This document shows, one piece after another, positions 1 through 27,420 of a stretch of DNA of 64,000 bases. Where the stretch lies: IMG/VR virus record IMGVR_UViG_3300014494_000005, positions 1 to 64,000 of that record; one strand, written 5' to 3'. The notes below the pieces were generated by a model. The model searched no databases. It saw nothing but the letters and a program-made list of their open reading frames with translations, and was not told the DNA's origin. The position numbers and the translations under genes were made by a program. Numbering within the stretch: the first letter of the stretch is position 1; each line of letters opens with the position of its first letter.

Positions 1-126
1 ACGTGTAGCATCCATTGCGGTGTTAGCAGGTTATTTATTATTTGTGCTACTAATTAAATTCATCTCGTTTTGATAGCTTAGTGTTTCAAAATCCGCAACG
101 ATATGCTACACGCAGCCGTTATAGCC
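1..126. repeat. attC-like palindromic element 1 (left end cut by window edge)
   Basis: Inverted repeats CGTGTAGCAT(2-11)/ATGCTACACG(103-112) and TTGCGG(15-20)/CCGCAA(93-98); ends in GTTATAGCC (118-126). Confidence 0.6.
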
Positions 127-128
127 AA

Positions 129-311
129 TTAAAAAACTACCACACAAGGAAACTCTAATGCTTTACCGAAAACAGGGCAATCGACTTCTTTTGCAAATTT
201 TACAGCAAAATCATAAGGGCAGTTTTCACCAAGCCATTTTTGAATTTGCTCTTTTGCATCGGCAGCAAATCTTACAACATATTTACCATCTCTATTAAAA
301 ACTTTTTTCAT
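129..311 (-). CDS. Hypothetical 60-aa protein between attC-like elements 1 and 2
   Basis: ORF fills the space between the two palindromes; short AT-rich leader. Confidence 0.7.
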   Translation of the reverse strand: MKKVFNRDGKYVVRFAADAKEQIQKWLGENCPYDFAVKFAKEVDCPVFGKALEFPCVVVF

Positions 312-327
312 AATTTAAAAATTAACT

Positions 328-422
328 GGCTATAACACACGGTATAAAACATGCCGTGACAAGCCTGTGTATAATTTGAAACGTTCTACATCGGCACGTT
401 TCATACCGCCACCGTTATACAC
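328..422. repeat. attC-like palindromic element 2
   Basis: GGCTATAAC...CGGTATAAAACATGCCG / CGGCACGTTTCATACCG...GTTATACAC; imperfect ~95-bp hairpin bounded by AAC and GTT. Confidence 0.7.
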
Positions 423-430
423 AATACTAC

Positions 431-462
431 ATTATACGTTCTAATTAGCATTTTGTTACAAA
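431..462 (-). promoter_or_regulatory. TTTGTAAC-N16-CGTATAAT promoter-like motif
   Basis: Motif with fixed 16-nt spacer, repeated at least 7 times in the window upstream of genes. Confidence 0.6.
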
Positions 463-466
463 ATTT

Positions 467-790
467 TTAATTAATATGTTCACAACGTTCAAAATTAATT
501 TCATTAAAATTTAAATTAATTTGACATTTATGTAATTTCCATATATTAGTATTATCATTTGGAATTATAAAAGCACTATCAAATAACTCATATTTTCCTT
601 CAATGTTATTTTCACCAACGACAATAAATTTAAATGGATTCCATTTTGATTTACCTGTAAATTGTTTTGTTCCATTATCATTTATTTTTTCTTCGATAAC
701 AAGAGTTGGATTTTCATTAAAATTTATTCTGAAAATAAAACTTCCCAAAATTAATTTACCATTTTTTACTTCATTTTTCATAATATTCAA
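467..790 (-). CDS. Hypothetical protein between attC-like elements 2 and 3
   Basis: 107-aa ORF; no recognisable motif. Confidence 0.65.
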   Translation of the reverse strand: MNIMKNEVKNGKLILGSFIFRINFNENPTLVIEEKINDNGTKQFTGKSKWNPFKFIVVGENNIEGKYELFDSAFIIPNDNTNIWKLHKCQINLNFNEINFERCEHIN

Positions 791-863
791 TTTTATTTAT
801 AATTATTCTTAAAAAGTTTTTGTTCGTTTTTCATATCAACATTTTACTTTAATAAACCGTACT

Positions 864-960
864 GTGTATAACAACGTGTATAAAACATAGCCAATTAAGG
901 TTTCTGGCTTATATCAAGTGTCGTGCGTGGCAACGTTTCATACACACAACCGTTAGCGTT
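864..960. repeat. attC-like palindromic element 3
   Basis: GTGTATAAC...GTGTATAAAACATAGCCA / TGGCAACGTTTCATACAC...GTTAGCGTT; shares TATAAAACAT.GCC and GGCA.CGTTTCATA with element 2. Confidence 0.7.
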
Positions 961-1135
961 CATTTGCCAACGCACTCTGATACATTTCTTCAAGGTCTTT
1001 AAAAAACTTATTTCCTTGAATTACTATCATTGATGGATTATATGTATTTACATATCTAGTGTAAACATCTTCAATTCTTTCATAACAATCGTGTTTATCT
1101 CTACCTTTTTCAGTATTAATCCATTGTAAATACAC
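953..1135 (-). CDS. Hypothetical 60-aa protein ending inside attC-like element 3
   Basis: Stop codon TAA lies within CGCTAAC (inverse-core-like site). Confidence 0.7.
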   Translation of the reverse strand: MYLQWINTEKGRDKHDCYERIEDVYTRYVNTYNPSMIVIQGNKFFKDLEEMYQSALANER

Positions 1136-1222
1136 TCTCGGCTTTGTTGCTGTTACTATTTTCAGTTCAGATACTTGTTTTTAAAGTCCATTTTAAATTT
1201 GTTTTGTATAACCAATACTACA

Positions 1223-1254
1223 TTAATACGTTCTAATTAGCATTTTGTTACAAA
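1223..1254 (-). promoter_or_regulatory. TTTGTAAC-N16-CGTATTA promoter-like motif (near-identical to 431-462)
   Basis: Same 16-nt spacer AAAATGCTAATTAGAA as the 431-462 copy. Confidence 0.6.
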
Positions 1255-1368
1255 AATTAACGTTTTTTATGAAAAAACTTCATTATTTTAATCCAAATTT
1301 TATCAATAAAAATTAATAAGTACATGAGAACTGCACCAAAAGTAACACCAATACAAAAATATAAAGAA

Positions 1369-1575
1369 TTAAATAGTTCCATTATCTTTATTATTTTTAA
1401 TGAAAATTACAATACCCCATATAGATAACATTAAAAATACTAATGCGCATATATATCCCCAAACAGGACGGTTTGGTTCAATTGTGGTTTTTGACATCGA
1501 GTATCCATAAATTAAGAAATACATTGCGAACATCAAAATCCTCAACACTTTCATTTTATATGGAATTATCTTCAT
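1369..1575 (-). CDS. Small membrane protein (2 TM)
   Basis: Two hydrophobic stretches. Confidence 0.6.
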   Translation of the reverse strand: MKIIPYKMKVLRILMFAMYFLIYGYSMSKTTIEPNRPVWGYICALVFLMLSIWGIVIFIKNNKDNGTI

Positions 1576-1615
1576 ATTATTTTACTATAAATAGTATGTT
1601 TAAAAGTATAATTAC

Positions 1616-1822
1616 TTATTTGTTTTGTAATTTTCTTACTTTATTGACTACTATTGGTCGTAATCCATCAAATTTTATGGTGTATTCAAACATATTACCA
1701 TATTTTATTTGTGTATCAGTAAGCTCATCAAAATGATGGGCATTAGTCCATATTTCTGATTTTTGAAGATTCTTTTGAATATTTTTATCTTCTATTGGCG
1801 AATAAACTTTTACGATTTCCAT
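1616..1822 (-). CDS. Hypothetical protein
   Basis: ORF co-directional with neighbours. Confidence 0.55.
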   Translation of the reverse strand: MEIVKVYSPIEDKNIQKNLQKSEIWTNAHHFDELTDTQIKYGNMFEYTIKFDGLRPIVVNKVRKLQNK

Positions 1823-1874
1823 TTTAATAATAATTAAATTAATTTTTCTTTAAATACTTATAATTTATTTTAAA

Positions 1875-2075
1875 TCATTGTTTTTCAAAATTTTCTAAAA
1901 TAAAGTTTATATTATAACTACAATATTCATTACCATATAATATATGATTTAATGTTATATCATCTTCATCAATGCCTAATACTTCATAATTGTCATTTTC
2001 GATAAATAATGGCATTTGAAAAATATTATATATTGTTTTTAAACATTTTAATTTATCGCCAAATTTTATTTTCAT
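1875..2075 (-). CDS. Hypothetical protein
   Basis: ORF co-directional with neighbours. Confidence 0.55.
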   Translation of the reverse strand: MKIKFGDKLKCLKTIYNIFQMPLFIENDNYEVLGIDEDDITLNHILYGNEYCSYNINFILENFEKQ

Positions 2076-2084
2076 ATTATTATT

Positions 2085-2381
2085 TTAATTGTATGACACT
2101 TCGTCATTTTCTTCAATTTCGTCAGTATTAAAACATTCATTTAAATCTTTAACGATATCATTTGGTTCTACAAATGTTTTAAAACACATACTTAATTCAT
2201 CTAAAACAATTCCATTTGGAAGTCTTATATTTTCAAAAGTAACAGAATAACCACCTAATTCATTAGGTTCGCATCCAAGTAATTCTAATACTTTTCCATT
2301 GGCAATTTCTTTATTTTCAGCTTCTACATTATCTATAAATAAAGAAACTAGACCAGTTGCTTCTACTTCAAATTTTTTCAT
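2085..2381 (-). CDS. Hypothetical acidic protein
   Basis: ORF track 2085-2432; ATG at 2381 (MKKFEVE) is the more plausible start. Confidence 0.6.
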   Translation of the reverse strand: MKKFEVEATGLVSLFIDNVEAENKEIANGKVLELLGCEPNELGGYSVTFENIRLPNGIVLDELSMCFKTFVEPNDIVKDLNECFNTDEIEENDEVSYN

Positions 2382-2446
2382 AATTTTTAATTTAAATACA
2401 AATATATTTGATTTTTTAAAGAAATGCAACAATAATAAAAAATTAT

Positions 2447-2839
2447 TTAAATTTTTTTAAAATTAAATTGGGTTCTTAGTCCAAATTCTTGTTCATCTGG
2501 AGGAAATTTTGTTAAGAACATATTATGAAAACCATTTTTTATTTCTTCAATAAAAAATCCATGAATTTCACCTTTAAATAAATTATTTCTTTCTTTAGAC
2601 TTCCAATAAGCAGTTTCATCATATGAAATAGGTGTTTTATCACTATTTTTATTACCCCAAGATATTTGTGTTTTTCCAACAATAGTCCAAAATTTATATG
2701 TAGATTCCATTATTTCAAATTTACTATCATGTAATTTGACTTCTAAAAGTGTTAAACAAATATCATTATTAGTATCATCTTTTAATATAAAATATTGTTC
2801 AATGATTTTAAAAAATTCGAATCGTGGTTTTACTTGCAT
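2447..2839 (-). CDS. Hypothetical protein
   Basis: 130-aa ORF. Confidence 0.6.
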   Translation of the reverse strand: MQVKPRFEFFKIIEQYFILKDDTNNDICLTLLEVKLHDSKFEIMESTYKFWTIVGKTQISWGNKNSDKTPISYDETAYWKSKERNNLFKGEIHGFFIEEIKNGFHNMFLTKFPPDEQEFGLRTQFNFKKI

Positions 2840-2899
2840 AATGAAAAATTATTATTTAAAATAGTTAAATTTTTTCGAAACATAAATTAAGTAACCTAA

Positions 2900-3262
2900 T
2901 TATGGGTGGTTCACAAAATAATAATGAAAATCTCCTTTAAAACCATAACTATTTTCCACTGAAGTTCTGACAATAATTTCATCGGTTTGAGATAATTCCG
3001 GGACAATAAGTGGTTCTTTATTATACTTATCAATACTTTTTAACATTTTACCTACAATAACAAACTCACCATCACGACCAGTAAAAATACCATGAATTTC
3101 ATTACTTATTATATCACCATCACTAAAAACAATAGTATCTTCATCAATAAAATTAGCAATATTAAATTTAGAATATTTTAATCGATTCTCTTTTCGTTCT
3201 TTGTATTCGCTATACGAAACTAAAATACCATACATAAAATATTGATTTCTTAATCTACTCAT
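2900..3262 (-). CDS. Hypothetical protein
   Basis: 120-aa ORF. Confidence 0.6.
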   Translation of the reverse strand: MSRLRNQYFMYGILVSYSEYKERKENRLKYSKFNIANFIDEDTIVFSDGDIISNEIHGIFTGRDGEFVIVGKMLKSIDKYNKEPLIVPELSQTDEIIVRTSVENSYGFKGDFHYYFVNHP

Positions 3263-3307
3263 ATTACTAAATTTTTTTTATAAAATAAATAACTTTTCAA
3301 AATATTT

Positions 3308-3318
3308 AAGTATTTATA
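3308..3318 (+). promoter_or_regulatory. AAGTATTTATA putative late-promoter motif upstream of tnpB
   Basis: Exact copy of a motif found 11-21 nt upstream of several ATGs. Confidence 0.55.
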
Positions 3319-3339
3319 CTAAATAAGAGAATAGTATAA

Positions 3340-4611
3340 ATGTTAAAATTATACAAATATAAACTAAAACCGGATAATAACCAAATTATTTTATTAAATA
3401 AACATTTTGGCTGTATTAGATTTATTTATAATTATTTTCTCAATGAACGTAAAAAAGAATATGAAACTAATAATCAAACACTTAATTATTATGATAATAC
3501 AAAAGCATTAACCGAATTAAAGCATTCAAATGAATATATTTGGCTTAATGAAATTTGTGCACAATCTTTACAACAGTCTCTTAAACATCTTGATGGAGCA
3601 TATAATGGATTTTTTAAAGGTAGGACAAAGTTTCCAAATTTTAAATCTAAACACAATAAAAATAGTTTTTGCGTTCCTCAAGCAGTAAAATTAATTAATA
3701 ATAAACTATATATACGTAAATTTAAAGGAGGAATTGGTGTTATTATTGATAGGAAATTTAAGGGAATTATAAAACAATGCACAATAACCAAAACACCAAC
3801 TAATGAATATTTTGTTAGTATTTTAGTTGAAACCGAACATGTTAAATTACCTAAAACTAATAAAAGTATTGGAATAGATTTGGGATTAAAAGATTTTGCA
3901 ATAACATCAGAAGGATTTAAATATAAAAACAATAAATATACTAAACAATATGAAAAGAAATTAAAAAAAGCACAACAACATTTATCAAAAAAAACAAAAA
4001 ATTCGAAAAAATTTGAACAACAAAGATTGAAAGTGGTTAAAATATACAAGAAGATAACCAATTCTCGTGTAGATAATCTACATAAAGTAAGTACTGACCT
4101 AATTAAAAAATATGACATAATTTGTTTAGAAGACCTTAATATTAAAGGTATGTCAACAAGATGCAAGCCAAAACAAGACAAAAATGGTAAGTATTTATCC
4201 AATGGTCAATCAGCAAAATCAGGACTTAATAAATCTATATCAAATGCTAGTTGGGGTACTTTTGTTGAAATGCTTAATTATAAAGCCAATTGGAATGATA
4301 AACAAATTGTTAAAATTAATAGATTTTATCCTTCAAGTAAAACATGTCATATTTGTGGCTATATAAATCAAGACTTAAATCTTTCTATTAGAGAATGGAA
4401 GTGTCCTAAATGTGGTATTGTTCATGATAGGGATATAAATGCTGCAAAAAACATATTAAAAGAAGGTCAGAAAATATTACTTAATGATTTAACAAATAAT
4501 ATTGACAATAACAAATCGTCAGGGACTGACGATAACAGACGTGGAGACCAAATAAGACCTGTTATAACGGGCACAATCGATGAAACGTCCAAAATTCTTA
4601 GCATAAGTTAA
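3340..4611 (+). mobile_element. tnpB: IS200/IS605-family TnpB RNA-guided endonuclease (no tnpA nearby)
   Basis: N-terminal HTH (YKYKLKP...FGCIRFIYN), RuvC-I IGIDLG, RuvC-II CLEDL, Zn ribbon CHICG...CPKCG, RuvC-III HDRDINAAKNI. Confidence 0.95.
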
Positions 4612-4657
4612 GAAGCCTAATTATTTTAGGTAGTCCATATGCATTATATTAAGGGAA
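4480..4657 (+). ncRNA. Putative TnpB omegaRNA scaffold, right end and guide
   Basis: GC-richer 3' end of tnpB, then GAAG-CCTAA/TTAGG hairpin (4616-4630)-TAGTCCA, typical of IS605 right ends; the following ~20 nt would be the guide. 5' boundary is approximate. Confidence 0.5.
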
Positions 4658-4671
4658 TATGAATCTTTATA

Positions 4672-5001
4672 TTATTCATTATAATCAGGATGACTTGTTA
4701 AATGCCAAAAACCACATTCATCACATTTATAGCTTCTTACGGGTCGTATATCTTTTTTTCCCATTCTTCTATTCATTCTTTGACCATGAAGATATCTTCT
4801 ATGTTTTTTACCAGAATTAATAGCTTCTTGAGCATCCCTAAATGAGGGATATTGAATCTTACCACATTTTGGTCTGAAATCGTTAGTAAATTCAACTTCT
4901 GCAAGTGGTACATTATCAATTTCTATTTTTGGCTCGGATAATGATAAATTTTTAGTTTCCATAATTTTCATTATTTTGATTATACTTTTCAATTTCATCA
5001 T
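4672..5001 (-). CDS. Hypothetical protein with C-terminal Zn-ribbon
   Basis: RSYKCDECGFWHLTS motif. Confidence 0.65.
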   Translation of the reverse strand: MMKLKSIIKIMKIMETKNLSLSEPKIEIDNVPLAEVEFTNDFRPKCGKIQYPSFRDAQEAINSGKKHRRYLHGQRMNRRMGKKDIRPVRSYKCDECGFWHLTSHPDYNE

Positions 5002-5515
5002 CTAAAATTGCCATTTGAATATATTCATCATCAACATTATATTCATAACATTCTTTATTGGCAATCATAATAACAACACCTTTTTTACAATGTTTTAATA
5101 TTCGTTTTAAATTGGCAAAATTATCATTATTTTGCCAAAATTTTGTTATAATACTAAGTAAATGATGTGGTTTATTAACACTGATGATTGGTGATTTTTT
5201 ATCTACATATCCACCAAGCATTGGTATCATTACATCATATCGTGGATTTATAATATCTGTTTCAATATCATATTGAAATATGGGAGTAAATACAAATCTG
5301 ATTTTATTAATTGATACACGATTTTCTGATAAAATATTTCTGTTTTTAATAATTAATTTTTTTTCATAATCCGATAATACATATGAACCAATAGAATATT
5401 TTTTATAAATTCTTTTATTAATAATTGAAGTGATTATTTTTTTAATTCTACCATAGAAAAAAATAAAAACACTTATTAGTAATAACGCAATTATTATTAA
5501 ATAAATTATTAACAT
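4952..5515 (-). CDS. Hypothetical protein with N-terminal TM anchor
   Basis: Hydrophobic N-terminus. Confidence 0.6.
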   Translation of the reverse strand: MLIIYLIIIALLLISVFIFFYGRIKKIITSIINKRIYKKYSIGSYVLSDYEKKLIIKNRNILSENRVSINKIRFVFTPIFQYDIETDIINPRYDVMIPMLGGYVDKKSPIISVNKPHHLLSIITKFWQNNDNFANLKRILKHCKKGVVIMIANKECYEYNVDDEYIQMAILDDEIEKYNQNNENYGN

Positions 5516-6066
5516 TTCTCTTCAATTAGTTTTTTAAACCATTCATAACTTTCATTTGATTTATCACCTGTTGCATTATCACAACGATAAAATTTTATAT
5601 AAAGGTCTAAACAATCAAGTAAATTTAAATCACCAATAAGTTTTTCAGCACGTCTTTTTGCCTTATACCAATCGCCATGTCTTCCACCTTGTGACCATGC
5701 ATTATATGCTTCATCATGTGATTGAATAACTTGAAGTATTTTAGTATTATTGCAATATTTTTCAGCAAATATTTCGGCAATTTTACCATGATGATTATCA
5801 CCCACTTTTGGTTTTGTATTGTCAACTTTATGTTTAAAAGTATCGTGAACTATTGCAATTAAACGTAAATCCTGACGGTCTTCATCATCAGCATAAAATT
5901 TATCAATGTTTTCTAATACTTCTTTAATATGATAAATAACCTGACCTTCTGGATGTCCACTTCTTGGGCGACCATGATTTGCACCTTGAATAAAAACAGC
6001 ATCAGAGATTATTGCAATCTCGATGCCGTTTTCAGGTTTCACGATATTTTTAATTAATTCGTTCAT
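5509..6066 (-). CDS. HD-domain phosphohydrolase
   Basis: GHPEG..YHIKEV, IAIVHDTFKH, late D (RCDN). Confidence 0.75.
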   Translation of the reverse strand: MNELIKNIVKPENGIEIAIISDAVFIQGANHGRPRSGHPEGQVIYHIKEVLENIDKFYADDEDRQDLRLIAIVHDTFKHKVDNTKPKVGDNHHGKIAEIFAEKYCNNTKILQVIQSHDEAYNAWSQGGRHGDWYKAKRRAEKLIGDLNLLDCLDLYIKFYRCDNATGDKSNESYEWFKKLIEEKC

Positions 6067-6128
6067 TATTTCAACTTTATTTCGAAACGATTAACCATCT
6101 TATTAATAGTTTCTTCTGGTACATTATG
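6066..6128 (-). pseudogene. C-terminal remnant of a P-loop (AAA_33/polynucleotide-kinase-like) gene
   Basis: HNVPEETINKMVNRFEIKLK* with its stop overlapping the HD ATG; upstream frame is broken. Confidence 0.45.
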
Positions 6129-6216
6129 ATTATTGCTTCATGCAGTGAACAACAATTCAGATTTCCAGACGCTGTATTTCGTTTCGACCACATGAAGTTT
6201 CAATAGTATATCTTTG

Positions 6217-6483
6217 TTACATTATTCTAAAATTTGTCACATATATTAATTTATTATTATTACTATAGATACCATCAACAAGAATAAATTTTTCATATCT
6301 TGTTTTAGATGAAACAACAGTTTTTTCTAACATTTCAAATAAAACAGAACCTTCAAATGCTTTTAATTTATGCTTATGTTTTTCATTTTCTGCAATATAT
6401 GAATAATATGTTTTTTTTATTCTTACTTTTGGTGTTGCTTTTCTAATTATTTTCCATATTATTTTGAGAGTTTCCGATTTCAT
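6217..6483 (-). CDS. Hypothetical protein
   Basis: 88-aa ORF. Confidence 0.5.
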   Translation of the reverse strand: MKSETLKIIWKIIRKATPKVRIKKTYYSYIAENEKHKHKLKAFEGSVLFEMLEKTVVSSKTRYEKFILVDGIYSNNNKLIYVTNFRIM

Positions 6484-6967
6484 TTTTTTCTTGTTTTACT
6501 TGTTTCCGTACTTCCATTAACGCTTTGCCTAAAAGATTCATACCTTGCCATTTAGTTTCATCAAGCACATCATCATTACTCCAATGCAATCCAATTCCCC
6601 ATACAGAATCATTTGGATTTGTTTCAACCAATATTTTATCACTAGTTGATAATAGTAATTCTTTTGAGCGTTTATCTTGACTAAATTTAGCATAATTAAC
6701 AGCTACCATTATATCAAAACAAGCAATCATCCATTTTTCAGTATTAAAATTTTTAACCATACGACCCAATGCTTTATTTTCTCTTGGTTCTGGTGTTTCA
6801 ACTATTTTTTTTGCTGTTTCCATATCACCAAAGAAAACAGCTTTTTCCCACATGAATGCTTGTTCTGTGTTAAAAAAAGTAATTCCTTTATATTTAAATT
6901 GACATATATGCCAATTTGATATTCTGGACTTATAAAAAAATACGTATTTATCCGTTATTCGTTCCAT
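6443..6967 (-). CDS. NADAR (YbiA/DUF1768) family ADP-ribosylglycohydrolase-like protein
   Basis: FFNTEQAFMWEKA, KALGRMVKNF, AKFSQ, LVETNPNDSVWGIG, GMNLLGKALMEVR. Confidence 0.9.
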   Translation of the reverse strand: MERITDKYVFFYKSRISNWHICQFKYKGITFFNTEQAFMWEKAVFFGDMETAKKIVETPEPRENKALGRMVKNFNTEKWMIACFDIMVAVNYAKFSQDKRSKELLLSTSDKILVETNPNDSVWGIGLHWSNDDVLDETKWQGMNLLGKALMEVRKQVKQEKNEIGNSQNNMENN

Positions 6968-6973
6968 TTTAAT

Positions 6974-7159
6974 CTATTTTAATAGTTTTCGTATATCTTC
7001 TTCCATTATTATAATTTCATTAATTTTTTTTGAAAAAGAATCAAATTTATCTTTATCATATTTAGATATTAAGATATTAATAATCCTTCTATCAAATCCC
7101 ATTTTTTCCAGAAAAATATATTGTTTTTCATTTAAATATAATGCTATGTTATTCATCAA
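6974..7159 (-). CDS. Hypothetical protein
   Basis: 61-aa ORF. Confidence 0.5.
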   Translation of the reverse strand: MMNNIALYLNEKQYIFLEKMGFDRRIINILISKYDKDKFDSFSKKINEIIIMEEDIRKLLK

Positions 7160-7446
7160 TTTTTGTTATATTTTACTGCTCTTTTATACGTACCAACACT
7201 TCCAAACGGATTATGATTATATAATGATTTATCTGCGGTATATGCCGATATGTCAATCCAAATTTCATCACCGGATTTTAAATCAATCACAGATTTAGCA
7301 ATGCTATTGTTATCAACAAAACTATGTAGATTAACACAAGCAAGTCTTTTATTGGTATTCTGAAATCTAATTTCATAAAAATTGTTTCTTTTTACAATCT
7401 TATCAATCTTAAATAAACCAAAATTTCCGTTAAATTGAGTTTCCAT
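7156..7446 (-). CDS. Hypothetical protein
   Basis: 96-aa ORF directly downstream of a promoter motif. Confidence 0.6.
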   Translation of the reverse strand: METQFNGNFGLFKIDKIVKRNNFYEIRFQNTNKRLACVNLHSFVDNNSIAKSVIDLKSGDEIWIDISAYTADKSLYNHNPFGSVGTYKRAVKYNKN

Positions 7447-7470
7447 ATCGAAAATATTAAATATTATACA

Positions 7471-7502
7471 ATATTACGAAAAATTATTTAAATTGTTGCA
7501 TA
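7471..7502 (-). promoter_or_regulatory. Variant motif TGCAAC-N16-CGTAAT
   Basis: Same 16-nt spacing as the TGTAAC motif. Confidence 0.5.
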
Positions 7503-7555
7503 ATTACAATACTTTTCCAAAACTAATTTGTATTTATCTATACAATATATATACC

Positions 7556-7708
7556 ATGAAAGCAAATAAAGAAATGTATTCATTAAGAATACCGTCAGAA
7601 CAACTGAAGTATTTACGTGATACTGCAAAAAATAACTTTACTACAGTTACACAATTAATTTTGGACTTAGTAAATCAAAAAATGAAAAGTGATATAAAAT
7701 ATGAATAA
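7556..7708 (+). CDS. Small ribbon-helix-helix-like DNA-binding protein (copy 1)
   Basis: 50 aa: beta-like MYSLRIP, then two helices (EQLKYLRDTAK, TVTQLILDLV); paralog at 12141. Confidence 0.65.
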   Translation: MKANKEMYSLRIPSEQLKYLRDTAKNNFTTVTQLILDLVNQKMKSDIKYE

Positions 7709-8534
7709 AATATGTGGAATTTATAAAATAACGTCACCATCGGGTAAAATTTATATCGGGCAATCGAGAAATATAAAACGAAGATTGAATGATTATATTA
7801 ATAATAGATGTTATGAACAATTATTAATATATCGTTCAATTAATAAATATGGTTGGAATATGCATAAATTTGAGGTAATTCATGAATGCACAGAACCAGA
7901 ATTAAATTATTTGGAAAAATATTATATAAAGTTTTACGATACATTTGATACAAAACATGGAATGAATTTAACAAGTGGTGGTGACCACATAAAACTTTCA
8001 AAAGAATCATTACGAAAAATTAGTGATAGTTCTAAGAATAGAATTGTTTCACAAGAAACTAGAGATAAATTTAGTAAAATTCATAAATGGAAAAAAATAT
8101 CTAAAGAACATAAATCAAGTTTAAGAAAATTTCATTTAGGTAAAAAACACACTAAAGAAAGTATTGAAAAGATGAGAATAATAAAATTAAATAAAAAACC
8201 ATCTAATGAAACAAAAGAAAAACTAAGAATTGTTAATACAGGAAAAAAACGTTCAGACATAACAAAAGAAAAAATAAGAAAATCAAAATTAGGAAATAAA
8301 ATATGGCTAGGTAAAAAACATTCTGAAGAAACCAAACAAAAATTAAGTGAAATTCATAAGAATAATTATGAAATTTATAACCAAAATAATGAATTGGTTC
8401 ATAAATTCAGAAATACCATTAGATTGGAATTAAAGAAATTAAATTTACCTCGTGAACGTTTTTGTGAAACATATAGAAGAAATGAAAAAATAAAAAATGG
8501 TAAATATAAGGATTGGTATATTATCAAACTATAA
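7701..8534 (+). CDS. GIY-YIG homing endonuclease with NUMOD3 repeats
   Basis: CGIYKITSPSGKIYIGQS, R and E catalytic positions, repeated GKKHS/TEETK.KL. Confidence 0.92.
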   Translation: MNKICGIYKITSPSGKIYIGQSRNIKRRLNDYINNRCYEQLLIYRSINKYGWNMHKFEVIHECTEPELNYLEKYYIKFYDTFDTKHGMNLTSGGDHIKLSKESLRKISDSSKNRIVSQETRDKFSKIHKWKKISKEHKSSLRKFHLGKKHTKESIEKMRIIKLNKKPSNETKEKLRIVNTGKKRSDITKEKIRKSKLGNKIWLGKKHSEETKQKLSEIHKNNYEIYNQNNELVHKFRNTIRLELKKLNLPRERFCETYRRNEKIKNGKYKDWYIIKL

Positions 8535-10022
8535 TTATTCATCAATTTTATTACATAATATGGTTGCAGTTAATTCGGGTCTTGTAAGGGCAGTATAAAA
8601 CAATTGATTTTTTTCACGTAACACCCAATTTTCTTCAAAATCGCTTAAGATGATTGTAACATGCTGATATGTAGACCCTTGCACTTTATGACAAGTTAAA
8701 AAATAGCCATAATCTAGGTCCTTGACAATAACTTCACCACTATTTCTAAGTCTACCATTTTGATATTTATCAATATTTTTCATTAATAAATTATTACGCC
8801 TGAATTCATAATATTTATTCCACATCTTCTTATTTGATTTTGCACAATCTTTAAAAAAATCGTGCATTTGTGCATATAAATGTAAATTTTTGTGGTTATT
8901 CGTATTAATAATAAAAACGTCTTCGAATTTAAATTTACCTTTGGGAAGGTCTTCACGAATTTTAACGGGATACCCACTAATTCCATAAGAATTTTCTTCT
9001 AAACCAGACTTTTCAATAACTCGATAATCAGCAGAATTTTGAATAATTATTTGATTTTGTCTATCATTTGTGATTGTTCGATATCCGCAAATAACATCAT
9101 TCACTTCAATAATATCTGCTTTATTTCCAAAAATTGCGGTTCTAACAACATTATTTGATTGCATTACAGTTTCATTTTTCCAAGCAATTCCTCGACAAAA
9201 ATTTATGTCTTTATTAAATTCTTCAGATGTGAATTTTTCCAAAACCATTTTTCTGAATTCTCTTTTATCTATAGTAAATATAATGCCCTCACCATTTATA
9301 TTAATATTAGTTTTTCTTGAAAAATTACCAGCATCAATACTCGTTAAATTATTTCTTATGATATCTGCAATCAATAATATGGGATTTGTGTCAGCTTGTC
9401 TCATAATTTCAGTGAGAATATATTTTTCAATATCTTCTTGAATAAAAACTGCAGATTCTTTTTCATTTATCGGAGGTAGCTGATGTGGGTCTCCTACGAA
9501 TAATACCTTTGTTCGACTATCTTTTGTTTTTTCTTTAATTAAATTAAAAAGGTCTTGATTTACCATTGAACTTTCATCCAAAATTACAAGGCTATAAAAT
9601 GTAATACGTGGTAAAGCGATTGGATTAAATTGAGGGAAGTTCGGTGAAAAATTTTCTAAATCCAAATCCGGACGTAAACCTAAAAGTGAGTGAAGGGTTT
9701 TGGATTCTTTTTCGGTAATATTTTGAATGATTCTGGTCGCCTTATGCGTGGGTGCTGATACTACAACACCATATCGATAATCATCTAATATTTTCTTTAT
9801 AATTGTTGATTTTCCACTACCAGCAGGTCCTTCAAGAGTAAAAAATGTTTTATCCTTTTCTTTTAGCCATTTCTTAATTCTTTGAATAGCTTCAAATTGT
9901 TGGTCATTAAATACAATTTTTTTACCATTTGGAAGAATTAGTTCATTATCAGCTACTGTTTCTTCTTCGTCTTCATTTAAAAAACTAAAAATATCATCAT
10001 TAGTTATCAATTCTTTACTCAT
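8535..10022 (-). CDS. dda: Dda-like SF1B DNA helicase
   Basis: Walker A GPAGSGKST, SAPTHKA, ILDESSMV, VGDPHQLPP, TCHKVQGSTY, YTALTRP. Confidence 0.88.
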   Translation of the reverse strand: MSKELITNDDIFSFLNEDEEETVADNELILPNGKKIVFNDQQFEAIQRIKKWLKEKDKTFFTLEGPAGSGKSTIIKKILDDYRYGVVVSAPTHKATRIIQNITEKESKTLHSLLGLRPDLDLENFSPNFPQFNPIALPRITFYSLVILDESSMVNQDLFNLIKEKTKDSRTKVLFVGDPHQLPPINEKESAVFIQEDIEKYILTEIMRQADTNPILLIADIIRNNLTSIDAGNFSRKTNININGEGIIFTIDKREFRKMVLEKFTSEEFNKDINFCRGIAWKNETVMQSNNVVRTAIFGNKADIIEVNDVICGYRTITNDRQNQIIIQNSADYRVIEKSGLEENSYGISGYPVKIREDLPKGKFKFEDVFIINTNNHKNLHLYAQMHDFFKDCAKSNKKMWNKYYEFRRNNLLMKNIDKYQNGRLRNSGEVIVKDLDYGYFLTCHKVQGSTYQHVTIILSDFEENWVLREKNQLFYTALTRPELTATILCNKIDE

Positions 10023-11457: not shown

Positions 11458-12021
11458 TTAAAATTTAACCCAACCATTAATAAAAGATAATGGAAGTTCA
11501 ATATAATTAATAATTCCACTCTCAGTATGTTCTTTAACTATTTCACCTATATTATTTAATTTTTCTCTTTCTAACCAATTAATTATTGATTGAATAACTT
11601 CTTCTTTTGAATCATTAGTTTTAAATTTACCAACACAACAATCCGAAACATCTTCATCGAAATAAAAAAACATAAATTTATTTGGTTTATTATTAGAATC
11701 ATAATTTTCTGCTTCAATTTCAGCAAGAATAACAATATCATCTCTAAAACAATTTAATTCAGTATGAAACATTTCGTTTTTACCTAATAAAATTTTATCT
11801 TTTAATTCACCTTTTGTATGATTATCATCGACTTTTTCATCATCTGGTGTATATCTATCGATTAAATAACACTTAATCGGATTAACATAATTAATAAATT
11901 CATTTAAAAATGTTGAAGATATATAACACCAAATAGTTCCATAAGGAATTGGATTATGTGCCACTTCTGATGGATAGTCAATACTTTCATTAAAGTAATT
12001 CCAAATTGTTTTATCTTTCAT
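11458..12021 (-). CDS. Hypothetical protein
   Basis: 187-aa ORF; TATCTTTG element upstream at ~12040. Confidence 0.65.
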   Translation of the reverse strand: MKDKTIWNYFNESIDYPSEVAHNPIPYGTIWCYISSTFLNEFINYVNPIKCYLIDRYTPDDEKVDDNHTKGELKDKILLGKNEMFHTELNCFRDDIVILAEIEAENYDSNNKPNKFMFFYFDEDVSDCCVGKFKTNDSKEEVIQSIINWLEREKLNNIGEIVKEHTESGIINYIELPLSFINGWVKF

Positions 12022-21015: not shown

Positions 21016-22059
21016 TTATTCTTTATTATCAATTAAAAACTTATTTGAAATTGCTTTAAAGCTAAGTCTACCCTGATTTTTAAGTTCATGCTTTACAAAT
21101 ACTACTCCTTCTCTTTCAATTAAAGGATTTAATACACTTTTATTTTGTGCATAAGCAAGTATTTCATCAACACTATTTGGAAGTACATAATTCCAATCCA
21201 ATATGGGAACGGTTTCTAACTTAAATTGATTAACTATAATATCAACCATTTCTTCATAAGGTAAGAATTCATATTTGTCAATATCAAACATACGAAAAAA
21301 TTTAATTGTTTGACCCTTTAACTTATATCTATTCTTTTGAATACCTTCACCAATAATTTCACCTTGTAATCCAAGATTTCTTCCAAGTTCACCAAGTTTT
21401 TTTTCAAGATAATTTTGTCTTGCGAATTTCCAAAATGAATTAGTTGAACTTTCATAAAATTCATAATTTCTACTACAAACACCAAATTCACCATTTTTCC
21501 AATAAAACGAACCACTGCTACCATCAAGTTTTTCTGTCGTTATAAACATCTGACCAACATATTCTATTGGTATATGCGGAAGTATTTGAATACGGTCTTC
21601 ATCAGTTATTATCATAAATGAAGGAAATCCACCCTTTGCATCACCTGCAAGTTCAGCAGGAATTGGTGCTTCATATTTAGTGATACCAAGTTCTTCAGTA
21701 ACATCAAGACCTATAGGACTAATAGCATTTTCATGTAATATAAGTTCCGATTTATCCAATTCATTAATATGCCATTGAAGTTCAATAGGAAGAATATCCA
21801 ATGGAAAACAAATGCCCTGCGAAATCTGTCCACGAAATTTACAGGTTCTAATACGAAATTTGTCTTTTCTTAAAAATTCAAATTCTGAACGTTCAGATAA
21901 TAATGAATCTATTTCACAATAAACACATAATTCTCCTACATGAAATTCATCTTTCTTTACAACTACTTTCCAACCCAATACTTGTGCAACTTCAATTGCA
22001 TCAGCATCTGGAATTGGATTGATGGATAATATTTTTTGTATTGTTGCTAATTTTCTCAT
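21016..22059 (-). CDS. RNA ligase, Rnl2/DRB0094 family
   Basis: N-terminal RKLATIQKI..PIPDADAIE, motif I TEKLDGSS, LQGEIIG, REGVVF, FKAISNKFL. Confidence 0.9.
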   Translation of the reverse strand: MRKLATIQKILSINPIPDADAIEVAQVLGWKVVVKKDEFHVGELCVYCEIDSLLSERSEFEFLRKDKFRIRTCKFRGQISQGICFPLDILPIELQWHINELDKSELILHENAISPIGLDVTEELGITKYEAPIPAELAGDAKGGFPSFMIITDEDRIQILPHIPIEYVGQMFITTEKLDGSSGSFYWKNGEFGVCSRNYEFYESSTNSFWKFARQNYLEKKLGELGRNLGLQGEIIGEGIQKNRYKLKGQTIKFFRMFDIDKYEFLPYEEMVDIIVNQFKLETVPILDWNYVLPNSVDEILAYAQNKSVLNPLIEREGVVFVKHELKNQGRLSFKAISNKFLIDNKE

Positions 22060-23990: not shown

Positions 23991-25118
23991 TTAAATGTCT
24001 TCTCTAATACGCATTGCTACTGGAAATCTTGGTACATTATTTTTTGTAGTCAATCCTTGATATTTAACTGTAAGCATTTTTCCAACAATTAATTCTGGAT
24101 TTTCAGCATATTTAATTAAATTATCCATATTACCAATCATTTTTGCTGCAAATTGAGTACCATTTTCAGTTTCACAAACAAATACTGCTTTTCCTGCCAT
24201 TCTACCTTTATTTCCAACCTTAACATCAACTACTTTATATTCAGAATCTTGAAATTCTTTCACCTTTTGTAAATCATATGAACGTTTATTTACATATAAT
24301 CCATCCATATTTCTTACCATACAACCTTCATAACCTTCTGCAAGGAAATGTTCAAATGCTTCCATAAGTTCATCTTCATTATTAACTACTATTGTTTCAA
24401 CAATATGAACTGCAGTATTTTCAAAAAATGGCTTAAGTGATTGTAAAAGAGTATTACGTTCACCATTAGATAGATTGGGAAGTGCAATGTCATAAATATG
24501 ATATTGAACAATTTCACAACCTTCTTTTGGTTTTTCTTGCCTGATAAATGAAGTTAATTCTTCAAATCTATTATGATATTGATGATTATAAAGTTCGCCA
24601 TCAAATCTATCACTAAGTCCACATTTTTCAAGTATTTTAATAATATGTGGCATACTTGTTATTTGTTTTCTGGTTCTTGACCAAAGAGTTACAGCACCAT
24701 CATCATATTGCGAAGTTGCTCTACACCCGTCCAATTTAGGTTGACAAAGTGCAGAATATTTTATTTTATGTCCTTGTTCACTGAATTTATGTGCAAGCAT
24801 TGGAGCAATACCACCTTCAATAATATCATCAGTTTTACCTGCTTGTGCATCTTCAATATTTTGAACGTAACCTTTTTTTAATTGTTTTTCCCAATCAGAT
24901 TTAGCTTGAGTTTCAGCTTGTTGTATTGGAGTAGTTTCATTTGACCTGCCAATATTTTTACCTCTAATTACTTGTTCTTTGCTTTCTTGAATTTTACCAC
25001 CAACTTGACCATAATTACTTATAATTGTAGGTATATTTTCAATTTCATTAACACTAACTTGCCATTCTTGAATAGCACCAGTACTGGTTTTTTTAAATAA
25101 TTTTGGAAATTCTTTCAT
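23991..25118 (-). CDS. ATP-dependent DNA ligase (phage type)
   Basis: PMLAH, QPKLDGCR, FDGELY, YEGCMVR, KRSYDLQKVK, TVKYQG..PRFP. Confidence 0.92.
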   Translation of the reverse strand: MKEFPKLFKKTSTGAIQEWQVSVNEIENIPTIISNYGQVGGKIQESKEQVIRGKNIGRSNETTPIQQAETQAKSDWEKQLKKGYVQNIEDAQAGKTDDIIEGGIAPMLAHKFSEQGHKIKYSALCQPKLDGCRATSQYDDGAVTLWSRTRKQITSMPHIIKILEKCGLSDRFDGELYNHQYHNRFEELTSFIRQEKPKEGCEIVQYHIYDIALPNLSNGERNTLLQSLKPFFENTAVHIVETIVVNNEDELMEAFEHFLAEGYEGCMVRNMDGLYVNKRSYDLQKVKEFQDSEYKVVDVKVGNKGRMAGKAVFVCETENGTQFAAKMIGNMDNLIKYAENPELIVGKMLTVKYQGLTTKNNVPRFPVAMRIREDI

Positions 25119-26262: not shown

Positions 26263-27420
26263 TTAATCAATACCTTTATCAGAATAACTTGAAAATTGTT
26301 TGGGAATACCAATGCATGAACCAATTGCTGTTGCATCTACAGTAATTAATTTACCACCACCAATACCAGTAACTGGAACTTTATCTGGAACTTGGTCAAG
26401 ACAAGTAACTACAACATTTTTTCGAGATTTTGGATTATTATAATTGTCACAATCAAATGCATATCTTAATAATCCAATATCAAGTATTGATTTTCTGAAT
26501 ACACCTTGCCATCCATCATTTACGTTGGTTTCTAATGGATTATCCTTAATATAACTAATGTCCATGCCTTCATTTGTCATCGGACCATTTCCATGACGAG
26601 TCTGATATGCACGTGTTATATAGTATGTATCGACATTTCTTTCATTAATTGTAATTCCAAGTTTGTTTATGATTTCAATTGCATTTTTGCTTGTTGTATT
26701 GCTTCGTGTAACATGTGGAAAAAATCCATAATCCATATCAAGCATGATGCCTTGACCACCTTCAAAAATTAAGTCAAAATAATCAGTAGGTATTGATGAA
26801 CCAAGTAAGTATATATCATATATTGTATTTACAATATCAAATCTACTTACAAGGTCATCACATGCTAATTTAAAATCATCAATTATTTTTTGAGTTTTGG
26901 AATTGGCAAGACTAATATATTCATAATATTTTTCTTGTAAAAGTTTGAGTTTAATATCACGAATTTTTGGATATTGTAAATCTCTGGCATATAAATGAAA
27001 AAAATCTTCATTTCTTTTAATTGTTGTACCAAAACCAACGCCAACAGTACCATGAAGATTAAGACTATCAAGTTTAATATTTTTCAAAATATCAAAAGGT
27101 GTTGTTATCATTGCATTTGCATTAATAAATAATTGAGGATGAATTTCCATTTTTCTCAATGCATTGCCTTCTTTTAGTATTCCCACAGGATTTACAGTAC
27201 AATATTCTGACCAATATGTTGGTGCGCCTAATAGTGTACCCGAACCAAAATTTGAGAATACATGTCTTTTATCATCAATAACTACTGTATGTCCGCATTG
27301 ATGCCCGCCATTGAATCTTATAACTAATGGATTATTGGATTTACTACAAAGATAATTTACAAATGCACCCTTGCCTTCATCTCCAAACAAAAATCCTAAA
27401 CAAATTGATATTGAATTCAT
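26263..27420 (-). CDS. purA: Adenylosuccinate synthetase-like protein
   Basis: GFLFGDEGKG, RFNGGHQCGHTV, GTVGVGFG, FEGGQGIMLD..YG.FPHVTRSNT, RAYQTRHGNGP. Confidence 0.85.
   Translation of the reverse strand: MNSISICLGFLFGDEGKGAFVNYLCSKSNNPLVIRFNGGHQCGHTVVIDDKRHVFSNFGSGTLLGAPTYWSEYCTVNPVGILKEGNALRKMEIHPQLFINANAMITTPFDILKNIKLDSLNLHGTVGVGFGTTIKRNEDFFHLYARDLQYPKIRDIKLKLLQEKYYEYISLANSKTQKIIDDFKLACDDLVSRFDIVNTIYDIYLLGSSIPTDYFDLIFEGGQGIMLDMDYGFFPHVTRSNTTSKNAIEIINKLGITINERNVDTYYITRAYQTRHGNGPMTNEGMDISYIKDNPLETNVNDGWQGVFRKSILDIGLLRYAFDCDNYNNPKSRKNVVVTCLDQVPDKVPVTGIGGGKLITVDATAIGSCIGIPKQFSSYSDKGID

Follow-up and report, generated by a model that had tools for sequence, protein, structure and literature searches.

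A likely phage version of the bacterial integron in a 349-kb phage of marine Flavobacteria

Integrons are held to be bacterial devices, and their phage examples have so far been either pieces of host integrons carried by temperate phages or small clusters of sites without an integrase. As for virulent phages, 2–4 predicted attC sites each, with no integrase, have been reported (Qi et al. 2023, PMC9892861). In T4-type phages, the exchange mediated by PeSLs is credited to homologous recombination between promoter-terminator repeats (PMC2839356, PMC4122927). Concerning Xer recombinases, their sites are duplexes of ~28 bp; pdif modules are bracketed by sites in alternating orientation. Finally, IntegronFinder-based surveys describe the Bacteroidetes as nearly integron-free.

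The DNA analysed here, referred to as the window, is a stretch of 64,000 nt (positions 1 to 64,000 of IMG/VR record IMGVR_UViG_3300014494_000005) located at the start of its own contig. Its positions 1–955 are likely the distal end of an integron-like platform that is phage-borne and self-encoded. This platform is probably an as yet undescribed phage version of the bacterial integron, carried by a 349-kb phage of marine Flavobacteria; no earlier description of a phage-encoded integron-like platform was found.

Like bacterial integrons (class 1, Vibrio superintegron), the platform has a tyrosine recombinase gene and an attI-like site at one end of the array, the gene diverging from the top-strand orientation of the sites; same-orientation hairpin sites with an AAC...GTT base, a conserved structure and variable loops; a crossover within G|TT; cassettes whose first bases complement their own site; and cassettes which are duplicated, reordered and, as far as comparisons can tell, reinserted next to attI. 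Unlike integrons, its recombinase is a Xer-like protein of 269 aa devoid of the ~47-aa IntI-specific insert, the basal stem is 15 bp long (7 in integrons), A.C/G.T mismatches take the place of extrahelical bases, and the carrier is a virulent-type jumbo phage. Moreover, no Pc-type expression logic applies, as the ORFs of the cassettes are encoded by the bottom strand and read toward the integrase. Since the recombinase has no IntI-specific domain and the ORFs are inverted, the system is called integron-like and not a canonical integron.

With the phages of Qi et al. 2023 (PMC9892861), it shares attC-like clusters and a DNA methyltransferase cargo, but it differs from those clusters by a complete platform (own recombinase and attI), by arrays reaching up to 16 sites per locus and by evidence of shuffling. 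The likeness to T4-type PeSLs resides in small accessory ORFs, bracketed by stem-loops and exchanged as modules in hyperplastic regions of large virulent phages; here, however, the exchange occurs site-specifically at TAA|C, and a dedicated recombinase and an attI are present. The phage enzyme has its closest relatives, in sequence and in structure, among the Xer recombinases (XerA, XerC/D), but the phage sites, in contrast to the Xer duplexes, are hairpins of 48–190 nt, in uniform orientation and with covarying stems.

Hairpin sites and cassettes of the window

The features found at the left end of the window are the following:

1–121, plus strand: attC-like site E1, 5'-truncated (covariance model 34.3 bits, E = 1.7e-5)
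119–414, no strand assigned: cassette made of ORF 129–311 (minus strand) and site E2, with crossovers at G|TTA (118|119) and CCG|TTA (414|415)
129–311, minus strand: cassette ORF, 60 aa (ORF listing)
333–417, plus strand: attC-like site E2, TAACA...CCGTTA, 85 nt (covariance model 63.3 bits, E = 2e-12)
415–952, no strand assigned: cassette made of ORF 467–790 (minus strand) and site E3, with complementary ends
467–790, minus strand: cassette ORF, 107 aa from TTG or 104 aa from ATG at 781
869–955, plus strand: attC-like site E3, 87 nt (covariance model 83 bits, E = 3.7e-17)
953–1135, minus strand: first ORF past the distal array end (ORF listing)
1200–1258, plus strand: copy of the left end of cassette 415–952 (416–466 vs. 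1207–1258, 92% identical over 52 nt)

The first-pass annotation, made from the sequence alone, had described three palindromes of ~95–125 bp separating small minus-strand ORFs. The description held, the palindromes belonging to one structured family found in same-strand arrays, while the sizes held in part: the TAAC...GTTA cores of E2 and E3 are 85 and 87 nt long, and the first site measures 126 nt when complete. The covariance model, trained on 49 other family members with E1–E3 not among them, detected nothing beyond these three sites across the 64 kb, and in particular no further site to the right of E3, the one most distant from the integrase. Only the first 5 nt of E1 are cut off by the window edge; its uncut copy (L023:8401–8526) in a 100% identical contig scores 50.7 bits. 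E1, which terminates with CCG|TTA at 116–121, has together with its own cassette a second copy 3 kb further left, adjoining attI. Concerning E2, copies 94–98% identical occur in phage contigs L052, L084 and L088, the similarity ending at 417–419.

As a whole, the family comprises 217 phage sites in 63 loci, all on one strand in 61 of them, with length classes of ~48, 87, 124 and 190 nt. The exact arm patterns are present in 79 and 52 IMG/VR loci. Eight base pairs of the hairpin display compensatory changes, in 106 cells, with a covariation score matched by none of 500 shuffles, and the stem pairs covary while the loop varies from ~10 to ~145 nt: what is conserved in these sites is their structure rather than their sequence, the terminal loop being variable. 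TAAC and GTTA are invariant across 49 aligned sites, and 189 of the 217 phage sites begin with the former and finish with the latter; outside these motifs, the site-end bases are cassette-specific. The earlier remark that the cores only partly match RYYYAAC/GTTRRRY was borne out, this 7-bp consensus being unmatched by the window sites, which read CTATAAC/GTTATAG, GTATAAC/GTTATAC and GTTAGCG. Also, conserved A.C mismatches of the top strand, at two positions and at a third in the flank stem, correspond to G.T pairs on the bottom strand, and the sites possess an asymmetric internal loop (2 nt vs. 5–7 nt) with no bulged G or T. Under default filters, the covariance model missed the diverged sites of Polaribacter phage P12002L and the 48-nt mini sites, both of which were recovered with the filters off.

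That flanks are cross-complementary between neighbouring elements and not within one element, as first proposed for this window, proved correct and general. In cassette 119–414, GTTATAGCC (118–126) is complementary to GGCTATAAC (328–336), and the ends 118–132 and 322–336 are 93% complementary across 15 nt; in cassette 415–952, GTTATACAC (414–422) is complementary to GTGTATAAC (864–872), with 93% across 14 nt for the ends 414–427 and 859–872. With a run of at least 4 nt as criterion, the right flank of a site and the left flank of the next were complementary in 60% of the 139 adjacent pairs on phage contigs, vs. 4% when the two flanks of one and the same site were compared and 3% in random pairings, while bacterial arrays gave 51% vs. 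5% and 2% in the controls. Furthermore, the left flank moves with its site whereas the right flank does not (44 cases vs. 4), and the boundaries of shared segments near a site fell exactly at the GTTA end in six cases out of six. An all-vs-all comparison of the inter-site modules yielded few common modules, because the cargo is extremely diverse. Read on the plus strand, the mobile unit is likely TTA, minus-strand ORF, site and CCG. The orientation initially put forward, in which each ORF precedes its own attC along the minus strand, failed: since the phage ORFs lie opposite to the bacterial integron strand, that ORF-attC unit is not what moves.

The circular junction of each cassette was rebuilt for folding. 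For cassette 119–414, the bottom strand then formed one hairpin at –24.8 kcal/mol, vs. –18.2 kcal/mol in array context and –19.7 kcal/mol for the top strand; for cassette 415–952, the corresponding values were –18.4, –11.5 and –14.0 kcal/mol. Folding the sites without constraints in array context resulted in split structures, or in z-scores that were weak for E3; a single hairpin emerges only after the cassette junction is rebuilt.

Neither cassette ORF matched a Pfam or PHROG family. The homologue of ORF 129–311 in L326, 59% identical, is an ordinary gene without flanking sites, and searches with ORF 467–790 recovered it only from the four contigs of the same phage. ORF 953–1135 takes its stop codon from the TTA of the final GTTA, within CCGTTAGCG (950–958); the stop does sit inside CGCTAAC, as first noted, yet the ORF is located past the last site and hence outside the array proper. 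No convincing family was found for it, the SduA_C match being weak (E = 0.098).

The repeat at 1200–1258 is preceded by GTATAAC, has no hairpin and gave no covariance-model match; it may possibly be a fossil cassette boundary. The 416–466 copy contains a sigma-70-like match (459 to 431 on the minus strand); promoter-like matches were, however, not above chance (10 observed vs. 9.9 expected from shuffles). No tRNA was found in the window, Rfam, which has no attC model, returned only noise (whole window at gathering thresholds, positions 1–1500 with E up to 10), and megablast of window 1–8000 against GenBank phages gave no match. Two short-motif matches, at 11762 and 18788, were rejected as elements, being coding sequence. 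A TnpB gene (TnpB-only element) lies nearby, at 3340–4611.

Recombinase, attI-like site and cassette rearrangements

The window holds no integrase and its array runs off the left edge, as the first-pass annotation had stated. Contig L023 (L023/L238), a 100% match to window 1–8521, adds six more sites leftward, the array ending at a conserved attI-like motif (..TTATATATTATA|GTTA..) and a 269-aa tyrosine recombinase. This phage-encoded recombinase gene, on the minus strand, spans –4118 to –3309 relative to window base 1, i.e. ~3.3 kb to the left (L023:11831–12640), ~300 nt from the innermost site, and is found again at the opposite end of the contig to which the window belongs. The suggestion that the phage relies on its own or a host IntI held in part: the phage does have its own recombinase, with R-K-H-R-H-Y residues, but it is Xer-like and without the IntI-defining domain. 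It scores 153 bits on TIGR02249 vs. a cutoff of 265, in two stretches, and the ~47-aa insert is missing, residues 181–260 of VchIntIA (2a3v) having only 33 counterparts. Its nearest relatives are XerA/XerC-like, 4a8e and 5hxy aligning end to end, and its best family is NF040815.

Relatives of the recombinase are encoded in 216 IMG/VR viral stretches, and the ~268-aa family is abundant in metagenomes, where the source names it only XerD or integrase. The sites are antisense to the integrase in 157 of 157 cases and upstream of it in 154. The attI motif TAAC|TATNATATAT was found in 55 of 66 distinct integrase-upstream regions, vs. 28 matches in 905 kb elsewhere, and the attI junction has TAAC alone in common with the hairpin sites. 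Among the integrase loci for which 1 kb or more of upstream sequence was available (60), the model detected no site in 21. Some site-less integrase loci hold 48-nt variants, missed by the model under default filters. That the adjacent recombinase is the enzyme acting on the array is inferred, no activity of the enzyme having been observed.

Both the architecture of the platform and the position of the crossover are shown. Whole-cassette duplication and reordering also occur in nature, which is shown by sequence comparison only. A 394-nt cassette is duplicated at 100% identity, from GTTAGG.. to ..CCGTTATA, one copy following a site and the other attI, with boundaries at GTTA. Contigs L292, L293 and L307 are 97–99.9% identical around the integrase, and their cassettes, themselves 100% identical, are reordered and cut at TAA|C; a 956-nt cassette occupies an internal position in L307 and the one next to attI in L292 and L293. 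Among isolates of the cultured Polaribacter phage Freya, the only differences are units located immediately upstream of the integrase, and all junctions fall at YYAAC|. Freya-type sites look simpler. As for the window's own cassettes, 119–414 and 415–952, they were not seen moving, the array being identical in the four contigs of the phage; L023, L044 and L075 are 100% identical to the window and therefore display no cassette-level variation. The early proposals of a captured cassette array and of integration at G|TT were supported in all tests run, among them the shared segments ending at GTTA and the reordering of whole cassettes.

Cassette cargo and chromosomal relatives

The identifiable cassette cargo includes seven DNA methyltransferases, Tad2-like and Tad6 Thoeris inhibitors, RtcB and ADP-ribosyltransferases. 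No family match was obtained for about 100 of 114 distinct cassette ORFs, so that the arrays constitute a pre-sorted catalogue of candidate counter-defence genes. Pfam and PHROG searches with the ten array-region ORFs of the window phage were empty, with the exception of a duplicated 76-aa ORF which matches a small membrane-protein family. The role of the array as a store of accessory and counter-defence genes is inferred.

Homologous arrays of the same site family are present in Flavobacteriaceae chromosomes, where the array-linked recombinases observed, of ~370 aa, are also without the IntI insert. The orientation of the cassette ORFs differs between the two: 116 phage ORFs are on the strand opposite to the sites and 5 on the same strand, vs. 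52 on the same strand and 2 opposite in chromosomes. In phages, the stronger-folding strand is the mRNA (gene-sense) strand. The G.T/A.C asymmetry is identical in the bacterial arrays, although their mRNA carries the other strand.

Proposed mechanism and alternative explanations

The best explanation, which we consider likely, is a phage platform with its own recombinase, an attI-like site and hairpin-site cassettes. In plus-strand order, it would consist of the recombinase gene (minus strand), the attI-like site and ten cassettes. The recombinase would cut at the invariant G|TTA, which reads TAA|C on the opposite strand, and recombination between two hairpin sites would excise a cassette as a circle, in which the two cassette ends would pair and complete the 15-bp basal stem; the flanks would be complementary across ORFs and not within one site because the ends pair in the excised circle. 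Recombination of the circle with attI would then reinsert the cassette adjoining the integrase. Excision and reinsertion at attI are supported by comparison only, no circular intermediates having been observed. As for the substrate, we lean by inference, and by a small margin, towards the folded bottom strand, i.e. the gene-sense strand. Against this explanation, besides the unobserved circles and enzyme activity, the window's own cassettes not seen moving and the integrase loci without a detected site, the IntI insert that contacts the extrahelical bases of a folded attC is missing from the recombinase, and the sites show mismatches, not bulged bases.

The alternative that survives best, although unlikely, retains the same platform and recombinase but has the sites read as duplexes, as Xer does at dif/pdif, the hairpin serving for termination or stability at the RNA level. 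In its favour are the closest relatives being XerA/XerC-like end to end, the missing insert by which IntI reads folded attC, the better-folding strand being the mRNA strand in phages, and the simplicity of the Freya-type sites. Against it, the stem covaries with loops of ~10 to ~145 nt, which is not required of a duplex-binding site, and the G.T/A.C asymmetry is unchanged in bacterial arrays although the mRNA carries the other strand.

A second alternative is a passive CALIN, whose cassettes would originate from a host integron, any recombination being due to a host IntI. Flavobacteriaceae chromosomes are indeed full of the same site family, and IntI1 is able to use attC sites of virulent phages, one of them from P12002L (Qi et al. 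2023). However, dozens of distinct phages have a recombinase of their own and a conserved attI where the array ends, the inverted ORFs are phage-specific (the counts run the other way in chromosomes), and the recombinases linked to bacterial arrays are also without the IntI insert, which makes this alternative very unlikely. The CALIN criterion, no integrase within ~4 kb, is not met either, given the ~300 nt between recombinase gene and innermost site. Taken alone, the window would resemble a CALIN.

Equally improbable are regulatory repeats (terminator/promoter units, similar to the PeSLs of T4) shuffled by homologous recombination. The sites are intergenic, with a stable sense-strand hairpin and a 52-nt repeat bearing a –35/–10-like match, and modular exchange by PeSLs occurs in T4-like phages. 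On the other hand, the breakpoints fall at one position, on the scale of a phosphodiester, and are not scattered through the repeat; the attI junction has only TAAC in common with the sites; the promoter-like matches are no commoner than in shuffles; and the complementarity of cassette ends is not predicted. Finally, MITE-like or IS200/IS605-derived palindromes moved by a transposase, for instance the nearby TnpB-only element, are all but excluded: the elements are palindromic, widespread and multi-copy, and a TnpB gene is at hand, but the remainder of the 64 kb contains no copy of them, target duplications are lacking and no TnpA was seen. Moreover, TnpB does not act as a transposase, the element is linked to its left flank, and the orientation is uniform in tandem arrays beside one gene.

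Returning to the preferred reading of a self-encoded phage platform, a virulent-type jumbo phage would carry a complete system whose design recurs in more than 200 viral stretches, and phages would gain a dedicated site-specific means to acquire, lose and reorder accessory genes. The result also indicates that chromosomes of Flavobacteriaceae harbour integron-like arrays, surveys having described the Bacteroidetes as nearly integron-free. A bolder reading, for which the evidence only just tips the scale, is that Flavobacteriaceae and their phages share a second, unrecognised integron-type lineage run by Xer-like recombinases without the IntI domain; phages (jumbo phages of ~350 kb, cultured Polaribacter and Cellulophaga phages) would carry their own copy as a reshuffling bank of counter-defence and accessory genes, a mirror image of the bacterial integrons in which defence systems are stockpiled, and cassettes may pass between host and phage arrays.

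Cultured systems are at hand, namely phages Freya, Ingeline, Leef, Danklef and P12002L. Of the two P12002L sites tested by Qi et al., attC1 was not located in the 12-kb stretch examined, while attC2 corresponds to L116 4125–4147. The latter is not among the three family members found by the model (filters off) around the methyltransferase gene of this phage, at L116 4914–4969, 5758–5815 and 6001–6124.

Hairpin sites and cassette ends

The array in the window is real. In all likelihood a jumbo phage encodes a complete integron-like system, apparently active, of which the window shows one end; the activity of the enzyme is inferred. Three GC-richer islands stand out within the otherwise AT-rich window 1-960, for which the first-pass annotation had proposed an integron-like gene-cassette array with cross-complementary flanks between neighbouring sites. 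Its reading of the sequence held: the pair near 118/336 was recovered by a repeat finder as 118-132/322-336 (15 nt, 93%), the pair near 414/872 as 414-427/859-872 (14 nt, 93%), and the stop of the minus-strand ORF 953-1135, said to lie inside a core site, is the TTA of CCGTTAGCG. The sites, scored with R1, a covariance model built from aligned copies of the family, are as follows.

1-121, plus strand: attC-like site E1, 34.3 bits
333-417, plus strand: attC-like site E2, 63.3 bits
869-955, plus strand: attC-like site E3, 83 bits

No further R1 match was found over the 64-kb window. All three sites share one design: TAACA and the left arm ACGTGTATAAAACAT come first, then a centre that varies, and after the right arm ACGTTTCATACAC a short unpaired segment leads to CCGTTA. 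The caveat that the R box is matched only in part also held, the 7-bp consensus being satisfied only in its AAC/GTT part, and the sites carry mismatches where bulged bases would stand.

In scans of IMG/VR by exact arm patterns, 79 loci had the right arm and 52 the left. Among 49 distinct aligned copies, which fall into two length classes (~87 and ~124 nt), TAAC and GTTA are invariant, eight hairpin pairs show compensatory changes, and 95% of cells are paired, vs. 21-37% with the partner columns slid; the covariation score was not attained by any of 500 shuffles. At two conserved stem positions, an A.C mismatch on the plus strand is a G.T pair on the minus strand. Rfam holds no family matching these hairpin sites. 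On the fetched viral loci, R1 found 217 non-overlapping sites in 63 loci, confined to one strand in 61 of them, with up to 16 sites per 14-kb locus and a spacing mostly of 150-1800 nt.

In 139 non-redundant adjacent pairs, the 12 nt following the GTTA of one site were compared with the 12 nt, reverse-complemented, that precede the TAAC of the next. Matches of 4 nt or more in a row were present in 60% of these pairs, vs. 4% for a site's own two flanks and 3% for random pairings. The match typically runs for 6 nt, meets a fixed A-versus-G difference (G.T on the minus strand) and then resumes, so that a 15-bp basal stem is expected in the circularised cassette. Rebuilt circular junctions of both window cassettes folded into single long hairpins.

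Folding energies of the two window cassettes (kcal/mol)
Cassette 119-414 (E2): bottom strand, circular, -24.8; bottom strand, array context, -18.2; top strand, circular, -19.7
Cassette 415-952 (E3): bottom strand, circular, -18.4; bottom strand, array context, -11.5; top strand, circular, -14.0

Near-identical site pairs in differing contexts have the left flank alone in common in 44 cases and the right flank alone in 4, and segments shared between contigs stop exactly at the GTTA end in 6/6 site-associated cases. This makes TTA-module-site-CCG the mobile unit, as read on the plus strand.

A 52-nt repeat, 92% identical, was also noted at window 416-466 and 1207-1258. Its second copy, just past the last site, is preceded by GTATAAC and has no hairpin; it could mark the boundary of a fossil cassette, result from insertion at a secondary site, or be regulatory sequence common to both places.

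Recombinase and attI-like site of the phage

Contig IMGVR_UViG_3300014494_000005 starts with the window, which covers its first 64 kb. A second contig, IMGVR_UViG_3300050009_000051 (L023 and L238), matches window 1-8521 at 100% identity and extends further left, where it carries the following features (window-relative).

-4118 to -3309, minus strand: tyrosine recombinase, 269 aa
reaching -3006: six more sites (R1)
between the left-hand sites, minus strand: small ORFs
-4 to 121: complete E1

The integrase reported as not visible in the window thus lies outside it, to the left, in the identical contig. It matches Phage_integrase and Phage_int_SAM_4, with its catalytic residues in place. The gene also lies 160 nt from the opposite end of the window's own contig (L239 and L238, 100% identical), hence this contig broke inside a repeat. 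The repeat is a cassette, a 394-nt stretch in two 100% identical copies running from GTTAGG.. to ..CCGTTATA: one follows the CCG of a preceding site, the other follows an AT-rich ..aaactttatatattata directly upstream of the integrase. This attI-proximal copy would be the expected product of excision followed by reinsertion at attI, an inference from sequence alone. The duplicated cassette, whose duplication accounts for the contig break at the array, carries an ORF for a 76-aa membrane protein (phrog_705, phrog_2169; L023:8521-8751 and 11523-11753), the start of which overlaps E1.

As a whole, the integron-type interpretation is supported; the phage system differs from canonical integrons in its recombinase and its cassette polarity. 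A canonical IntI identity was rejected for the recombinase, given its sub-cutoff family scores and the mostly missing IntI-specific insert. Its best families are NF040815 (XerA/integron integrase; 168 bits vs. a cutoff of 220) and TIGR02249 (153 bits vs. 265, split in two stretches). Against VchIntIA, residues 19-179 align to 16-180 and 213-268 to 261-316, so that ~47 residues of the IntI-specific insert are absent. End-to-end alignment was obtained with XerA and with a Pyrococcus XerC-like protein. In public sources, its relatives are named only XerD or integrase.

The platform in other phages and in bacteria

Relatives of the recombinase are encoded by 216 IMG/VR stretches, of which 80 (58-100% identity) were kept, several from contigs of 276-362 kb. 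In these 80 loci, R1 hits are antisense to the integrase in 157/157 cases and upstream of it in 154/157, the nearest site being typically 100-1000 nt away. The integrase lies less than 1 kb from a contig end in 20/80, as expected if arrays break assemblies. Of 66 distinct regions, 55 have the attI-like motif TAAC|TAT(T/A/C)ATATAT at 27-88 nt ahead of the integrase gene; elsewhere it was found 28 times in 905 kb. Variable cassette ends adjoin it exactly at TAAC.

Three loci, L292, L293 and L307, are 97-99.9% identical over the integrase and downstream genes, and their arrays differ by whole units.

Cassette order in three related loci (nt)
L307: 528, 956, 625, 817, 939, attI
L293: 1081, 528, 276, 810, 956, attI
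L292: (956), 625, 817, 271, 810, 956, attI

Units that recur are 99.6-100% identical from end to end, and all junctions fall at TAA|C. Most sites here are 48-nt mini sites (TAACG-TCCGATGATAAACAA-loop-TTGTTTATCATT-TGTTA), mixed with full-length ones. Mini sites were found by R1 only with filters off (24-27 bits); the numbers given for sites and for phages with arrays are therefore too low.

Cultured phages follow this pattern. Isolates 1-10 of Polaribacter phage Freya carry an integrase 38% identical to the phage recombinase. In the isolates compared (Freya_1, 5, 6, 8, 9 and 10; L327-L333), differences are limited to units of small ORFs, amounting to 0 to 4.1 kb, directly upstream of this integrase, with all junctions at YYAAC|ACCCCTATAAC: Freya_9 lacks a 304-nt integrase-proximal unit present in Freya_10, and Freya_6 has a unit absent from Freya_10. 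The paper describing Freya took these integrases to point to a temperate lifestyle. Freya sites look different (hairpins GTTGG...CCAAC, cut at the 3' end), and their geometry is unresolved. In Polaribacter phage P12002L, three family members, each opposite in orientation to the phage's genes, bracket a DNA methyltransferase and a small ORF, in a region where Qi et al. 2023 (PMC9892861) called a CALIN.

Concerning bacterial chromosomes, one genome per species was scanned for the right arm. This gave at least 120 stretches, nearly all in Flavobacteriaceae or other Bacteroidota, including Aquimarina, Polaribacter, Tenacibaculum, Maribacter, Cellulophaga and Winogradskyella. R1 showed same-strand arrays with sites of ~125 and ~190 nt, and flanks are cross-complementary in 51%, vs. 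5% and 2% in controls. In three loci, a ~370-aa recombinase, in one case 46% identical to the phage enzyme, lies upstream of the array and is co-oriented with it. ORFs and sites are on the same strand in 52 chromosomal cases and on opposite strands in 2; in phage arrays, these numbers are 5 and 116. Chromosomal cargo (AraC regulators, hydrolases, beta-lactamase-fold proteins, AbiEii, Fic, restriction and methylase genes, group II intron reverse transcriptases) looks similar to that of sedentary integrons. The reverse transcriptases (RVT_1, GIIM) are three ORFs in loci L118-L237; attC sites of classical integrons are targets of some group II introns.

A possible chromosomal attI, ..AATTGTTA|CCACACATTTGA.., was seen downstream of the recombinase gene in Aquimarina (L126:6050-6120), and a similar AATTGTTG, perhaps also an attI, downstream of the recombinase in a second bacterial locus (loci L126, L177, L178); the possible chromosomal attI differs from the phage TATNATATAT motif. 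Short MAG-binned contigs (L143, L164, L179, L203, L228, L232) carry phage-type arrays with ORFs opposite the sites. The first five have stretches 74-97% identical to IMG/VR phage contigs, and these MAG contigs are probably mis-binned phage DNA.

Integrons and CALINs in phages (PMC9892861), as well as PeSLs, have already been reported. A phage-encoded platform such as this one was not found described in the open full-text literature; priority cannot be excluded, subscription literature being outside the search. Nor did the open full-text literature searched yield a description of integron-like arrays in Flavobacteriaceae, and the IntegronFinder 2.0 paper describes Bacteroidetes as nearly devoid of integrons.

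Phage cargo and other window genes

Pfam gave no match for ~100 of the 114 distinct ORFs in phage cassettes, which range from 41 to 482 aa (median ~100), and no family match was found for the window's own cassette ORFs. The identifiable ones are seven DNA methyltransferases, Tad6, a Tad2-like protein, RtcB, a PAPS-reductase-fold protein, a GNAT acetyltransferase and ADP-ribosyltransferase folds.

Outside the array, a TnpB/IS605 OrfB-type gene (3340-4611, plus strand) stands alone among minus-strand genes; its product has HTH_OrfB_IS605, OrfB_IS605 and Cas12f1-like TNB domains (phrog_506, 7e-126), and no TnpA was seen nearby. Window 4900-64000 is rich in homing endonucleases (GIY-YIG with NUMOD3, HNH, and LAGLIDADG at 33617-34603) and dense in RNA-repair genes (RNA ligase at 21016-22059, Thg1-like, HAD_SAK_2, NADAR). 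A Dda-like helicase (8535-10022) and a DNA ligase (23991-25118) are also present. An adenylosuccinate-synthetase-family protein is encoded at 26263-27420 (minus strand); one window ORF, not tied to these coordinates, matches the PHROG '2-aminooxy adenylosuccinate synthetase', and a dCMP deaminase and other nucleotide-metabolism genes occur as well. A PurZ-like base modification of the phage DNA is conceivable.
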